DNA from: Scyliorhinus canicula
Lineage: Eukaryota
Length of the DNA: 64,000 nucleotides
Assembly (NCBI RefSeq): GCF_902713615.1
Contig: NC_052149.1
Coordinates: forward strand, 71,103,443 to 71,167,442
Reading direction: 5' to 3'
A program made the translations under genes and the position numbers. The notes below the pieces were generated by a model that saw only the letters and a list, made by a program, of their open reading frames with translations, did no database searches and was not told the DNA's origin. Below are positions 11,003-61,855 of the stretch, in pieces. Each line of letters opens with the position of its first letter. Positions within the stretch are counted from its first letter, which is position 1.

Positions 11003-11409
11003 GTAAGTTGATATAACGATGAACTATTGTGATAAAAAAAAATCCTTGCACTTGTTTGCTTTGTGCACCAGAAATGCTAATCTGAAAATTAATTATAATC
11101 CTGACGGCAAACAAAATGGTTATTGACGAATATAAAATCTCTTGACAGTAACTTGGCAATTCAAATAAAGATAAAATGAGTTTGCGTATGTAGCTTTTAT
11201 TTAAGTACGCATACTCAGTTTTCAATAACAAGGTTGTCTGCTGGAGATAGAATGTTAGTTTAAGTTAATTCAATACTTTCATTGCTGTGAATTAATAGAA
11301 AGTGTGCTAATATTGCAGGGTGCCTATACTTGTAGAAATGCTAATGAGTTTTTAATTGAGTGGTTATGCATATACAGCAGATATATAGAGAGAATAGTTT
11401 CTCTTCCAG

Positions 11410-11481
11410 TGGCCTGAAACCAGAGGACAAACGGGGTGGCAGTGGATCACACAACTGGGGAACAGTGAAGGATGAACTTGG
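11410..11481 (+). CDS. SERBP1: SERBP1 coding exon (HABP4/PAI-RBP1 domain)
   Basis: ctcttccag|T acceptor and GG|gttagt donor. Encodes [24 protein letters not shown]; phase 2 fits both neighbours. Confidence 0.96.
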
Positions 11482-14728: not shown

Positions 14729-14909
14729 GGAAAACGAAGTAGAAGAAGTTAAAGAAGAAGGCCCAAAGGAAATGACCCTGGATGAGTGGAAAGCCATGCA
14801 AGATAAAGAACGGGCAAAAGCGGAGTTTAATATCCGCAAGCCTAATGAGGGTTGCGATAGCAGTCAGTGGAAAAAGGGTTTTGTTTTGCGCAAACCCAAA
14901 ACTGAGGAG
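14729..14909 (+). CDS. SERBP1: SERBP1 coding exon
   Basis: gtctacag|G acceptor and GAG|gttggt donor. Encodes [60 protein letters not shown]. Confidence 0.97.
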
Positions 14910-35588: not shown

Positions 35589-35645
35589 TCTAGCATCTCT
35601 GTTCCAAATGTCGATGACCCAGAAGCTTTCCCAGCTCTGGCCTAA
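35589..35645 (+). CDS. SERBP1: SERBP1 last coding exon with stop
   Basis: ttctttttcactttgcag| acceptor. Encodes SSISVPNVDDPEAFPALA* (human ends APDVDDPEAFPALA*). Confidence 0.97.
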   Translation, partial: SSISVPNVDDPEAFPALA

Positions 35646-48317: not shown

Positions 48318-48686
48318 AGAACATAGAACAGTACAGCACAGAACAGGCCCTTCGGCCCTCGATGTTGTGCCGAGCTTATACTGCTGACGATTGACTGCCC
48401 GGGGAAAGTTTTTCTTTACAAAAAAAGGAGCACTTCTTGCTCTTTTCCATCTTCGTAACATCATGTAACAGTTTAGGATGGTTGCAAATTTGTCTTTCAC
48501 TGGATTACACAGGTACTGTACTGCAAGGATAAGCATTTGAGACCAACTGTAATGTAACTAAGTTCTGAGTACATAAAATGAGTTGTCATTCTGGTGTGCT
48601 CCATGTGCCTATCCAATAACCGCTTGAAAGTTCCTAAAGTGTCCGACTCCACTATCACAGCAGGCAGTCCATTCCACACCCTAACT
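48318..48686 (-). mobile_element. Chimeric CR1 3' end containing a 215-bp copy of the IL12RB2 3'UTR (48372-48586)
   Basis: CR1 tail 48318-48375; reverse complement of 60634-60848 at 48372-48586; CR1 ORF2 end (RVWNGLPAVIVESDTLGTFKRLLDRHM) at 48587-48686. Confidence 0.9.
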
Positions 48687-48689
48687 ATT

Positions 48690-49615
48690 GAGAGAGCAGC
48701 AGAGTTTACGTTCCATGTCTGTGCCCTTTGATCTGAACTGGGAAAAATTAGAAATGTTATAGATTTAAAGACGTGATGAAAAACAACAGAAGAGAAGATC
48801 ATTGACAGGGTGAAAGGGAGAGGAGACAATAGTGGTGCAAAGCCAAAGGGAGTAAAAATAGGGCAAGTAAAGAAAATGTATTTCGAGAGATGGGTAGTTG
48901 ATTGATTAACAAATACAAAATCAAAATTAAAACAAATATGAGGAAAATGAGAGCAAGTCATTGCCTGCAAACAAAATGGAGGCCGCGATTGCAGTGTGAA
49001 ATTGAGTCCACAATTCTAAAGGCCTGTTTGAAACATTAGGTGCTGTGGGTTGAACTTGGAATGCTGCAGGAGGCCAAGGACAGTGTGCTGTCAGAGAGCA
49101 AGGTGGAGATTTAAAATATCAGGCAGCCCGAAGCTGAGGTCACGCTCACAAACTGAACAAAGATGTTCCACAAAGCAGGCGCACAACCTGCTTTTGGTTC
49201 TCCCAGTATAGAGCAGTGAGTACAATGTGCTAAATTAACATGCATGTCTTTTAAGTGCCTTAGGTGGTGAGGAGAGGAGGAAAAAGGGCAGGTGTTGAAA
49301 GGTGCTATGGGTAGGGAGTGGGATGTTGGGAGGTGACTGGAGTGTGGACTAGGATGTTAGTGAGGAGAACGCTCTCCTCGGAATGCTGAAAGGGGAGGGA
49401 GGGGGCAGATATGTTTGGTGGTGACATATTGCAGGTGGCAGAAATGGTGGAAGATGATCCATTGAATATGGAGGCTGGCGAGGTGAAAGGGGAGGATGGG
49501 GGAAAGCCTATCATGGTGCAGGGAGGATGGGGATGGGGTGACAACATAGTGCTGGGAATAGAGCAGACGTGGTTGGGTGGAGGGTGAAATCCTTGGTTGA
49601 ATTCATCAGAACTAT
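48690..49615 (-). mobile_element. Degraded Penelope-like element 3' part (GIY-YIG remnant)
   Basis: Reverse strand ctctatactgggagaaccaaaagcagg (LYTGRTKSR, like LYIGETKRR) and SVLGLLQH remnants next to a pLTR-like repeat. Confidence 0.65.
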
Positions 49616-58394: not shown

Positions 58395-59250
58395 AAAAAT
58401 AATAATAATAATAATAATAATAATAATCTTTATTATTGTCACAAGTAGGCTTACATTAATACTGCAAAGTCACATGAGGGGTCTTTTCTGTGGTTTAAAG
58501 TACAAGTTACCTACAAAAATAGCATTAGTCAATGTTGCTTTTAATTAGTTACAGTAAAAATCTTAGAACTTGAAATCTTCTTTTTAGTTGGTCATTATTT
58601 TTCTACAGTTACCAGTCTCTATACGGATCTTAACAAAAATGAAACATTATTTGTTGAGTTTTACACTGTTTGGAGTTAAAATAATAATAACATTTATAAT
58701 TAACGTATTTTAAAAAAAGGACTTTTGCAATCAGGGAATCAGTAACATTTCATAAATAGGTTGGAGAAATGTTGGAGAAATGATTGGCAATCGTGTAGCA
58801 CATTTCACCAATTTTGAAGTCTAGTCACTGTTATTATGTGGGAAAACACAGCAGCTAATTTTGCACAAACAAACAAACGAATAAGCAGTAAATTTCTTTT
58901 GGAGAGAACTCCCTGCTTGCTTTGAAAATGTGCCATTGGATGTTTTCCATTCACCTGAACAGGCAGATGGAGCCTGAGTTGAATTTCTCATCCACAACAC
59001 ACGACCTCTTAACACTGCAGTGAAGTTACTGTGAAAATCCCCAAGTCGCCACATTCCAGTGCCTGTTCGGGTATACTGAGGGAGAATTCAGAATGCCCAA
59101 TTCACCTAACAAGCACATCTTTCGGACTTGGGGGAGGAAACCGGAGCATCCGGAGGAAACCCACGCAGACACGGGAGAACGTGCAGACTCCGCTCAGACA
59201 GTGACCCAAGCCGGGAATCGAACCCAGGTCCCTGGCACTGTGAAGCAACA
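58395..59250 (-). mobile_element. HE1-like SINE in Gypsy pol, interrupted by a 542-bp foreign segment (58467-59008)
   Basis: Tail (aat)n..gtcacaagtaggcttacattaatactgca at 58395-58466 resumes as ttaacactgcagtgaagttactgtg at 59009. Confidence 0.82.
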
Positions 59251-60881
59251 GGGGGTGTGACCCAATCACTTACATTGATGGTTTGAGCACTGCCCTCTCA
59301 ACCAGCCTGTCTAATTCTGCCCTGACCTTGGGCCTAATGGCATACGACACTGACCTATCCTTTAAACATCTTGCTTGGCTTCCGTCCTTAATCTTTAGCT
59401 TTACTGAGCTCTCTTTCATGCTTCCCAGCTCGCCATGTTTCTTTAAAATCTTCAGTAGACCTCCTTCAGACCCGACATGAGTTTCACTTTGGCCCAATTT
59501 AGTTTGATTCACTCCAGCCAGGTTCTCCCCATTAGGACTGGATAGTTACCGTTGACGACGTGCAGGGACAAGTCTGCTATCTGTCCATTGCGCCTTCAAT
59601 GGCCAGTACGTTCAACAACAGTTTGTCATTGTCATTAAATGGCAGGAGAGGCTTGAGGGGCTGAATGGCCTACACCTGCTACTATGTTCCTGTGACCACC
59701 TCATCGGCAGTTTTCTTTGTGGTATTTTTAAAAGAAAGGCTTGCGGATCACGAAGGGAAACAAACAAGAGCTTTTATTGGAAAGGTGTTTACTCAATAGG
59801 CTGTAAAGTCAGACTGACCATTTGCCTGCGCAAACGGCTGATGACATCATCTATACATCACGTGATCGAACTTTCAAGGTAACAAACATGAATACACAGC
59901 ACCAGGCACGTAATGGATGGGAGTGTAGGTTTAGAACATATGGAGAAAAGGATATAACACATTTTGCATGAGATCCAGTTTATGGAGGCTGGAAACGGGG
60001 ACGTTTGGATAAGATGGCATTCATAGTTACGCACTGAGATGGTGATCACATGGAGAATTACAACAGTGATAGCAGTGGAACGGAAGGAAGGCACCGTTCA
60101 TGACCGAGCAAATTAAACTTGAATGATGTCAAGGTTCAGCATTGCTGATTGGTGAAGTCGGTGGGTTAAGCAGAGAGGCAGGCATCAGTTAAAGGGAAGA
60201 GAAAAGGATGGTTTTTACTTTAAGGAAATGTTCATGCATCAATTGCAAAATAAAGTGCAGCAACTTTAAGAAACTCAAAAGGGATCTTCGTTCAAGGTTC
60301 ATGGTCCTGTTTTGTGTGGCTAATGGTGAAGTGGTTGAAATCAAACAGCAACTGTCGTGATTTACAAAGTTGCTGTTTCCTTAAGTTGTTAAACTGTTGG
60401 CTGGAGAAGCCTAAAGTGTAAACCTCTGACATTATGAATTTTTAAAAGATATTCCAGGGTCATGCCTAATGGGAAGAAATGTTCACAAGTATTACCTCAT
60501 TGCATGAGAGCAAACATTCCTGATGTCACTGAAAGAAATCTACAAATCTGCTCCGAGACTGTCCACAGATAATTGTTTTACAGGTTGCAAACAATGTTCA
60601 AGGTCACTGAGATATACAGCTCTCTCACCTTTTACAACTCATTTTATGTACTCAGAACTTAGTTACATTACAGTTGGTCTCAAATGCTTATCCTTGCAGT
60701 ACAGTACCTGTGTAATCCAGTGAAAGACAAATTTGCAACCATCCTAAACTGTTACATGATGTTACGAAGATGGAAAAGAGCAAGAAGTGCTCCTTTTTCT
60801 GTAAAGAAAAACTTTTCCCGGGCAGTCAATCGTCAGCAGTATAAGCTCTCAAAATACAAAATGTTAATAATCGTGATCATC

Positions 60882-61412
60882 TCATTCCACAAGCGAACTG
60901 CAGTCGATTCTCACTACATCTAATGTCAGCTTCCCTCCGCAGGGGATTTCCGTTCTAGCCAAGGAAGGAAGAGGCATGAATGTAAAGGAATCTGCAAAAA
61001 AATCACCATCAGCCTCTTTAGTGTTGTCAGTAGCATGGAGAAAATTGGAGGGGATGTAACCAGTATTTTGGCTTCTTATGGAGTTGTTTGAATCCGTGAG
61101 GTCCGGGTTAATTTCCACAGAGGGCAATTTTTCAATGTATAAACAAGGGAGCTGGCACTTGTAATCCAGAATTCTCCCTTCGCTGTCCGCTGGTGAAAGA
61201 GCTCCAGGATTTAGTTCCTTGCTCTGGTGCAACTTACTAGCTGTGGACTGAATTAATAGGGATTTCAGGCTATGCTGTTCTTGGTCACCAATCTCTCTAT
61301 TGATGCAGAATTCCTGCTCGGGTGATATTTCCTCTACTTGTAGAGTCTCAGGATCTTCATAAGTGAATGTTGATCCAGTTTGGAAATCAGCATATGTTAG
61401 ATCCATCCTGTC
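60882..61412 (-). CDS. IL12RB2: IL12RB2 last coding exon (cytoplasmic tail)
   Basis: Minus-strand acceptor cacttttcttactgcag|GAC. Encodes DRMDLTY...YEDPETLQVEEI...GYIPSN...CGGKLTLDVVRIDCSSLVE*, matching human GYLPSNID (STAT4 site) and CGDKLTLDQLKMRCDSLML*. Synteny with SERBP1 supports it. Confidence 0.92.
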   Translation of the reverse strand, partial: DRMDLTYADFQTGSTFTYEDPETLQVEEISPEQEFCINREIGDQEQHSLKSLLIQSTASKLHQSKELNPGALSPADSEGRILDYKCQLPCLYIEKLPSVEINPDLTDSNNSIRSQNTGYIPSNFLHATDNTKEADGDFFADSFTFMPLPSLARTEIPCGGKLTLDVVRIDCSSLVE

Positions 61413-61855
61413 CTGCAGTAAGAAAAGTGAGCAAATTCAGAAACATATGCAGCTGTTGGTCACATTTCAAAAGTGGAACTAAGTACATTTTATCATTTTT
61501 TTTAGTGGTCCTTTTAGATAGCTTTTCCCTTTCCCCACCCTTACCTGGTCCTATAATTTTAAAAAGAACCCCATATAGGCTAGATGTTTGCAACCAAAAA
61601 GATGTGCTTCTCACAGGAAGGGAACTGCTATTTCCTTGCAATTGGTTGCCATGAAACAATAGAGACTAGGAAAGTCTGACTGATTTTCAGCTTATGATCT
61701 ATTGCCAATTTATGTTCCACACATTTCCAAAACAGCTGAACCAAAGGCTTCTATTATAATATGAGTGACAATCCAAAGGCTGCATACCACCCAGTGAGAG
61801 ATAGTGAATCTGGTTTAAAATCAAGACATTATTCTCCAGCTCATCAATCCCCTTC

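Follow-up and report, generated by a model that had tools for sequence, protein, structure and literature searches.

A one-off, probable template-switch scar places an inverted copy of part of the IL12RB2 3′UTR inside a young CR1-type LINE of the catshark Scyliorhinus canicula

Insertions of the MMB-TI kind can be recognised by three signs, in that the copy is inverted, its template lies nearby and microhomologies flank it (PMC8421209), and the frequency of point mutations is raised at MMBIR junctions (PMC4352052). In primates, short-range template switches have been described in which synthesis transiently switches to the opposite strand and back, so that a reverse-complement copy of tens of bases, taken from within ~100 bp, replaces the original bases (PMC7954356). 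LINE 3′ ends joined to foreign sequence are also found in LINE chimeras such as U6/L1 and WEIRD/Mg-SINE/MGL, which need two template switches (Gogvadze et al. 2007, PMC2104539). As for the CR1 group of LINEs, its members typically end not in poly(A) but in a hairpin and, after it, a short microsatellite (PMC8665684).

Here, we describe a locus of the catshark S. canicula in which a 215-nt patch, an inverted copy of part of the IL12RB2 3′UTR, lies inside a single CR1-type LINE copy. The features are given below, in positions of the window, by which we mean the whole 64,000-nt stretch of DNA that was analysed.

48318–48687, minus strand: CR1-type LINE copy, young, 5′-truncated at 48687/48688
48318–48371, minus strand: LINE tail, last 54 nt, with GTTCTAT 7-mer repeats in the sense strand and a GGCC...GGCC hairpin at 48346–48358, seen in the fold
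48372–48586, plus strand: patch, reading as IL12RB2 sense on the plus strand and including the junction bases GAGC (48372–48375) and TGT (48584–48586)
48587–48687, minus strand: end of CR1 ORF2, 101 nt, coding ...VRVWNGLPAVIVESDTLGTFKRLLDRHMEHTRMT, 100% identical to several genomic copies
60634–60848, minus strand: donor, nt 34–248 of the IL12RB2 3′UTR, contiguous with the last exon
60882–61436, minus strand: open frame of 184 codons holding the last coding exon of IL12RB2, with its TGA at 60882–60884
35628–35645, plus strand: SERBP1 coding end (...DDPEAFPALA), with its TAA stop at 35643–35645

The closest match among the described systems is MMB-TI (Osia et al. 2021, PMC8421209; Beck et al. 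2015, PMC4352052), with which the locus shares an inverted nearby template, a donor that is retained, microhomology at two junctions, the replacement of a few tens of recipient bases and point differences near a junction. Three features of MMBIR/FoSTeS, namely a retained donor, microhomology at each junction and an inverted template in cis, are present, here as a long-range case. However, the template lies 12 kb away, compared with at most 100 bp in the operational definition of MMB-TI (the MMBSearch limit, PMC8421209); the 208-nt insert stands alone, with no accompanying copy-number change; and the variant is a possibly fixed one of the shark germline, whereas MMB-TI was described in yeast, patients or tumours. 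The likeness to the primate switches (PMC7954356) lies in the transient opposite-strand switch and return and in the reverse-complement copy that replaces bases, but the catshark patch is an order longer and its template two orders more distant. With the LINE chimeras (PMC2104539) the locus has in common the junction of a LINE 3′ end with foreign sequence, the need for two switches and a breakpoint that adjoins the enzyme-recognised tail module. In contrast to them, the patch is internal rather than 5′-terminal, consists of a fragment rather than a full-length RNA, is antisense, is followed by an in-register return to the same LINE template and does not recur in the family. Co-orientation, a full-length RNA at the 5′ side and, within the spacings surveyed, recurrence or a preferred site were not found, and co-orientation would hold only for an unannotated plus-strand RNA. 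Finally, in its general description the recipient resembles HE1/HER1 of sharks and rays, as tabulated in PMC3747384, in having an RT-bearing LINE with a very short 3′UTR, a hairpin and a 7-mer tail, together with a tRNA-type SINE that has the same last ~58 nt.

Self-comparison of the window recovered a single inverted pair, in which 48372–48586 is the reverse complement of 60634–60848 over 215 nt, with 99% complementarity, the two arms being 12,047 nt apart. For both patch and donor, similarity breaks off sharply at each end. There are two patch/donor mismatches, at 48404 (G vs A) and 48421 (A vs G), which leave perfect blocks of 32, 16 and 165 nt; given the length of the match, chance is no issue for this pair. 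A BLAST of the window against itself gave no further two-copy segment that was 80 nt or longer and reached 95% identity, and in the 4.22-Gb genome a whole-genome search found exactly two copies of the 215-nt segment, the patch and the donor. The first-pass annotation, made from the letters alone, had described a 215-bp inverted copy with only two substitutions and had predicted two genomic matches, and both the inverted-repeat and the whole-genome searches agree with it.

The two flanks of the patch (48318–48371 and 48587–48687) match one high-copy LINE family on the minus strand, at 97–100% identity. We oriented 29 family copies onto the window and compared their anatomy, which in all of them consists of a variable flank, (ATAGAAC)n, the 54-nt hairpin tail, a 42-nt stretch (gagcattgtcc...ctccctgt in intact copies) and a body of more than 1 kb. 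The tail at 48318–48371 is 100% identical to the tails of other copies, its left boundary meets variable flank in 29 of 29 copies, and the GGCC/GGCC hairpin and GTTCTAT repeats are found at the 3′ end of every one of them. The stop codon of ORF2 falls inside the 42-nt stretch, ~75 nt from the end of the element. Family copies were examined over their 3′ 1.5 kb, and RVT_1 was detected on the minus strand in L014 (E = 1.9e-23) and L005 (E = 2.8e-12). The GTTCTAT 7-mer resembles the amniote 8-mer ATTCTRTG (PMC8665684). Judging from the RVT_1 domain of family copies, the hairpin-plus-microsatellite end, the very short 3′UTR and the 5′ truncation, the recipient is a CR1-type LINE. Its last ~58 nt, up to GAGC, are common to a 45,000-copy SINE family, copies of which are also present in the window. 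As both flanks belong to one family and are in register, the patch lies inside a single CR1 copy, as initially annotated, except that homology reaches 48687 rather than ending at 48686. The 155 CR1 bases of the window copy show 0 differences from the best genomic copies, indicating that the CR1 insertion is very young. Clear target-site duplications are often absent from CR1-type elements.

At the two junctions, intact family and donor, written in the same direction, read as follows.

Left junction: intact family ...GTGCC GAGC attgtcc...; donor ...ttga GAGC ttatactg...
Right junction: intact family ...ctccc TGT CATTCTGG...; donor ...gagt TGT aaaagg...

Microhomology is therefore present on both sides, 4 nt (GAGC) on the left and 3 nt (TGT) on the right, and either can be assigned to either source. 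Under the usual random-join model, the joint null probability of at least 4 nt and at least 3 nt is ~0.0013. Since the recipient repeat is known in its intact form from thousands of copies, both microhomologies can be read directly. The flanks are 42 nt apart in 2,473 intact copies; here, 35 nt of CR1 were lost and 208 donor-only nt were gained, and the patch removed the last ~six codons of ORF2, the stop and the first ~17 nt of the CR1 3′UTR. Whereas the GAGC common to the left junction and the CR1/SINE tail had already been pointed out, the alignment to CR1 that had been proposed at that stage added the right-hand TGT and the 35 replaced nucleotides with the ORF2 stop. The two-sided microhomology rules out a blunt capture and points to synthesis primed by annealing, i.e., a double template switch.

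Counted from the left junction, the two mismatches are at 33 and 50 nt, and the other 165 nt contain no further one; such clustering has a chance probability of 0.05–0.11. Both are located at homopolymer borders. Their clustering near one junction fits error-prone MMBIR synthesis, although at p = 0.05–0.11 the signal is marginal. We also considered ADAR editing as their origin, but read in the IL12RB2 sense they comprise one A to G and one G to A change, with no consistent signature.

The frequency of such events was assessed by a whole-genome pattern search with exact 13- and 16-nt anchors that flank the 42-nt stretch, which gave the following counts.

LINE anchor spacing 30–49 nt: 2,473 copies
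LINE anchor spacing 50–80 nt: 2 copies, with a 22-nt tandem duplication and a 15-nt snap-back inverted duplication (L039), both self-templated
LINE anchor spacing 81–141 nt: 0 copies
LINE anchor spacing 142–202 nt: 0 copies
LINE anchor spacing 203–263 nt: 1 copy, the present locus, doubling as positive control

Hence, among 2,476 subfamily copies surveyed up to a spacing of 263 nt, only the present locus exceeds 80 nt. For the partner SINE, which has the same tail boundary, 45,158 copies showed normal spacing and 23 a spacing of 60–120 nt. A second cognate tail, or a restart within the tail, was seen in all 23, and foreign DNA with in-register resumption in none of these 23. The patch is thus not a dispersed repeat, there being only two copies genome-wide, and it is not a normal part of a CR1 subfamily, as no comparable patch was found in the 2,475 other LINE copies; both had been named at the outset as findings that would speak against it. 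Nor do the LINE and SINE spacing surveys support a reverse-transcriptase hot spot at the tail boundary. Altogether, the patch is genuine and was seen only once, and it is best read as the scar of template switching by a polymerase, a type of mutation already described. A true short-range switch also occurs in the same CR1 family, namely the 15-nt snap-back of L039.

Regarding the genes on either side, proteins named IL12RB2 align with the open frame at 60882–61436 from frame residue 7 onwards, covering the C-terminal 178 residues through the last one, with identities of 98.9% in Scyliorhinus canicula, 91.6% in S. torazame and 80% in Mustelus asterias; weaker matches of the exon reach lungfish and caecilians. 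The donor begins 33 nt past the TGA, in agreement with what had been annotated, as the frame, the position of the stop and the alignments to named proteins concur. On the plus strand, matches to the HABP4_PAI-RBP1 domain (PF04774) at 11402–11479 and 14736–14849 of the window belong to SERBP1, which is upstream of and convergent with IL12RB2 across a gap of 25 kb. Both exon homology and SERBP1 synteny therefore identify the donor as IL12RB2 3′UTR. Within this gap the patch has a central position, the stop codons of SERBP1 and IL12RB2 being ~12.7 kb and ~12.3 kb away, respectively. Downstream of IL12RB2, the first AATAAA is found at 59773, ~1.1 kb from the stop codon, which places the donor in the proximal 3′UTR and the patch far outside the mature message; the mature mRNA probably ends at about this point and would not come near the patch.

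We then looked for the patch in other sequencing data, using a 276-nt probe over both junctions. Of its 246 31-mers, 109 (44%) are patch-specific, as they span a junction or cover a mismatch, and the other 137 (0.557) are also present in the UTR copy; 24 words were sampled per run. Six runs, two of DNA sample S3 (study P2) and four of different samples of study P1, contained 23/24 words. Five same-species runs from four other studies (three RNA-like and two DNA-like) reached a plateau of 15/24, close to the predicted 0.557 and thus corresponding to a UTR-only word set. Patch-specific words in two studies and at least five samples make an assembly chimera, an artefact that had been considered from the start, very unlikely. 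Of the same words, 16/24 were present in a run of a second, related organism and 7/24 in a third. The plateau in RNA-like runs and these partial word sets fit an expressed, conserved UTR donor, and the presence of the UTR-copy word set in runs that we guess to be RNA suggests that the donor is probably transcribed. In a search for an assembly haplotig of the locus, the right flank, an old and diverged repeat, gave only its self match. Three runs, X9 (DNA, sample S7) and the RNA-like X6 and X11, appeared to match the patch-positive runs in their number of flank words while containing no patch-specific words, and so did X10, a run of the patch-positive sample S3. As a lead only, the patch or the whole insertion could be polymorphic; the pattern of X10 means that allele or path dropout during contig building is also a possible cause.

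As to how the scar arose, we favour, with a probability of about 0.5, a germline templated insertion-deletion at the DNA level, of the MMBIR/FoSTeS or polymerase-theta class. We infer the order of events, the kind of polymerase and the use of DNA rather than RNA as template, as follows. A young 5′-truncated CR1 would first have come to lie halfway between SERBP1 and IL12RB2, which are convergent, and later its 3′ end would have been the site of a break or a stalled fork. The nascent 3′ end (...GAGC) would then have left its template and annealed by 4 nt to the transiently single-stranded plus strand of the IL12RB2 3′UTR, 12 kb away, where 208 nt would have been copied in inverted orientation before synthesis returned to the CR1 by the 3 nt of TGT, 35 nt further along. 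The CR1 would be a bystander, and the resulting 215-bp inverted repeat is probably neutral. Several observations support this DNA-level reading. The donor is in cis at 12 kb, and by our own arithmetic a random donor would be that near with a chance of ~6e-6; it has been retained, it is the sole other copy in 4.22 Gb, and 35 nt were lost at the recipient. CR1-group elements constitute 22–34% of elasmobranch genomes (PMC13343379), so that landing inside one requires no special link. The absence of foreign patches from the SINE at 60–120 nt spacing, against 45,158 normal copies, speaks against a reverse-transcriptase hot spot at the tail site. In addition, the DNA-level reading requires no unannotated RNA, and within the spacings surveyed there is no recurrence in the ~47,000 elements that use the tail. 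Against it, no allele with an unpatched CR1 was seen at the locus. Furthermore, the left breakpoint coincides with the point, ~58 nt from the 3′ end, beyond which LINE and SINE tails are no longer homologous; just 101 nt of CR1 follow the patch, so that the copy is unusually short; and the CR1 flanks, with 0 differences in 155 nt, are very young, as is the patch, with 2 in 215 nt. These three coincidences would be easier to explain by a single messy retrotransposition. Moreover, the 12-kb template distance is far beyond that of a typical MMB-TI event, and no simple single-fork geometry exposes the required strand. Nor did we find support for a hairpin of the skipped 35 nt that would bring the departure and return points together, as the folding of the CR1 3′ end did not surpass that of shuffled sequence.

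In a retrotransposition of this kind, the CR1 reverse transcriptase would have changed template twice within one round of target-primed reverse transcription. The enzyme would have copied the 58-nt tail, jumped by GAGC to a local nucleic acid of plus-strand sequence, copied 208 nt, returned by TGT 35 nt upstream in the CR1 RNA, added 101 nt and aborted. Polarity limits the possible templates. The nascent plus strand, or first-strand cDNA, grows rightwards from 48318 when the CR1 is read in sense, and the patch needs the plus-strand sequence of 60634–60848 as template, so IL12RB2 mRNA cannot have served; the first-pass annotation had likewise disfavoured a simple switch onto that mRNA, the patch being antisense to it in the CR1 sense. 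Candidates are chromatin-tethered SERBP1 read-through RNA, some other antisense RNA or exposed single-stranded DNA. SERBP1 read-through RNA had been suggested in the annotation and does have the right polarity, since SERBP1 is upstream on the plus strand and convergent, but read-through would need to extend over 25 kb. In favour of the reverse transcriptase, both flanks come from one CR1 copy and are in register, the left junction coincides with the end of the tail module common to LINE and SINE, the 5′ truncation is severe, and neither CR1 nor patch is anything but very young. LINE reverse transcriptases are known to jump twice between templates (PMC2104539), and tail restarts after poly-C in L047, L051, L056 and L057 suggest that the enzyme restarts on other templates. 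These restarts, however, go to cognate tails and not to foreign sequence, no such patch was found in the 2,475 other LINE copies or, in the 60–120 nt class, among ~45,000 SINE copies, and the enzymes of CR1 elements are considered to be strict in requiring the 3′ hairpin and microsatellite of their own RNA (PMC8665684). In known LINE chimeras, the parts share one orientation, the cellular RNA at the 5′ side is full-length and synthesis does not go back to the LINE (PMC2104539), whereas here the foreign 208 nt are internal, run antisense to the annotated mRNA and have CR1 on both sides. We found no notable fold at the breakpoints, in either the CR1 3′ RNA or the donor. A donor that is itself a small structured RNA, retro-copied like U6, was rejected, as Rfam gave no match and folding nothing notable. 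The annotated idea of a polymerase that jumped out and back is therefore still the best reading, in view of the two microhomologies and the uniqueness of the patch; as to its choice between a reverse transcriptase and a repair enzyme, a repair or replication polymerase is the likelier, and the CR1 enzyme the less likely but still plausible candidate.

The other explanations are less likely still. Microhomology-mediated end joining might have linked a free copy of the UTR segment, by each of its ends, to the CR1 where this had suffered a double-strand break; such a copy could be a nascent strand that had been displaced, a fragment of Okazaki size, microDNA or cDNA made from an antisense RNA. 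The intact donor, the microhomology at both junctions and the small recipient deletion agree with this, the cis origin fits a local release of fragments, and 208–215 nt is close to the size of a nucleosome or an Okazaki fragment. By sequence alone, such a capture is indistinguishable from copy-and-return synthesis, but microhomology at both ends would need chance or trimming; we consider it improbable. Much less credible is the reverse direction, in which the IL12RB2 3′UTR received the segment from the intergenic site, or a third source for both. Here the polarity is a matter of parsimony: the segment at 48.4 kb splits, with exact borders, a repeat known intact from 2,473 copies, and at 60.7 kb it runs on into unique sequence directly after the stop. 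UTR-copy words were found in the second (16/24) and third (7/24) organisms, with nothing suggesting the patch there, and the genome holds no third copy. Hardly any weight is left for the last possibility, that the patch is not real and represents an assembly chimera, a dispersed repeat or a normal CR1 subfamily part, given 23/24 words in six runs from two studies and five samples when UTR-only runs stop at 15/24, only two genomic copies, and a gap of more than 80 nt in 1 of 2,476 subfamily copies.

No function is indicated for the patch, which is located in a 5′-truncated CR1 without promoter, and whether or not the patch is there, any plus-strand read-through would run antisense to the UTR. 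In principle, a transcript spanning both arms could form a hairpin or dsRNA (longest perfect block, 165 bp), and the 215-bp, 99% inverted repeat could be a candidate substrate for a 12-kb inversion. The repeat brackets the distal IL12RB2 3′UTR and its polyadenylation region. The locus provides a natural, base-resolved example of an inverted templated insertion that is both long-range (12 kb) and long (208 nt). As events of this type have mostly been described in yeast, patients and tumours, a germline case from a shark with a 4-Gb genome adds a useful observation. If the reverse-transcriptase reading were true, stringent CR1-type elements could pick up and disperse fragments of nearby genes.

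A second patched retroelement is present in the window, ~10 kb from the first. The SINE at 58395–59250 is interrupted near its 3′ end by a 549-nt insert (58468–59016), which has one other full-length copy, on the same chromosome 1.13 Mb away, in direct orientation and with 93% identity, the homology being confined to the 549 nt. The junctions of the insert show microhomology (TTAACA, and one or two A), and there is an 11–12-nt target duplication. We count this second cis-templated patch as support for the DNA-level reading, and long-range templated insertion may not be rare in the catshark genome; were the reverse transcriptase responsible instead, the SINE patch would be another instance of the same process. 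Two patches 10 kb apart suggest that young repeats could record, genome-wide, the rate of templated insertion and whether retrotransposon enzymes have a share in it. The self-BLAST of the window also gave one 90-nt pair at 90% identity, which is probably an old repeat.

The window appears to hold a second, older cis-templated insertion besides the patch at 48372-48586, which is an inverted copy of an IL12RB2 3'UTR segment inside a young minus-strand CR1. A 549-nt insert breaks a SINE 45-70 nt from the SINE 3' end; the insert has a single other full-length copy, which sits on the same chromosome at a distance of 1.13 Mb and in direct orientation. The features are as follows, with G000 denoting the species' own assembly.

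Window 58395-59250: interrupted minus-strand tRNA-type SINE with an (AAT)n tail; insert at 58468-59016
L034:1499-2049 = G000:C4:72288434-72288982: donor of the SINE insert, direct orientation, 93% identity to the insert

The donor copy has no SINE sequence at its flanks. The junctions of the insert show microhomology (TTAACA; A/AA), and the SINE target is duplicated over 11-12 nt.

The patch replaces a stretch that spans 42 nt in intact copies of the CR1 subfamily, and only two other copies showed changed spacing (50-80 nt) at this site. The first of these is a classic short-range template switch.

L039, G000:C11:30599073-30599151: 15-nt snap-back inverted duplication of neighbouring CR1 bases
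L040, G000:C17:21809466-21809558: 22-nt tandem duplication

In the partner SINE, a high-copy family sharing the 3' tail of the CR1, 23 copies (L042-L064) carry another tail 60-120 nt past the first. Most of them consist of a heavily 5'-truncated SINE adjoining the 3' end of another SINE, and in four (L047, L051, L056, and L057) the sequence restarts within a cognate tail, immediately past the SINE poly-C run. These double tails suggest either jumps of the reverse transcriptase to cognate tails or insertions into tails.

To the right of the CR1 insertion, the flanking DNA (window 48688-49400) itself consists of old repeats, with 68-82% identity to many loci; the young CR1 was therefore inserted within an ancient element, and its pre-insertion site could be rebuilt from paralogous copies of this flank. 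Among sequencing runs, X9, X13, and X15 (all from sample S7), X6, and X11 apparently contained words from the locus flanks and none specific to the patched copy, in contrast to X3 and X25 (sample S3) and study P1. These k-mer shares suggest that the patch, or the entire CR1 insertion, may be present in some individuals of the species and absent from others, albeit from an unreliable signal, as one run of a patch-positive sample likewise had flank words without patch-specific ones.

Three further CR1-linked sequences stood out.

L006, G000:C1:125589692: CR1 copy ending at …CCCTAACTC
L020, G000:C1:136894653: CR1 copy ending at the same base, …CCCTAACTC
L009:2092-3099, minus strand: tandem array of ~1 kb with repeated translated units (...SLYQSRQSVPEH/TVCTRA...)

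Past their shared break, L006 and L020 run on into one and the same unrelated sequence (caattaacatttctaatg...), and they are probably pieces of a larger composite repeat or have a nested insertion in common. The array in L009, directly upstream of a CR1 3' end, is a minisatellite inside or adjoining the element.
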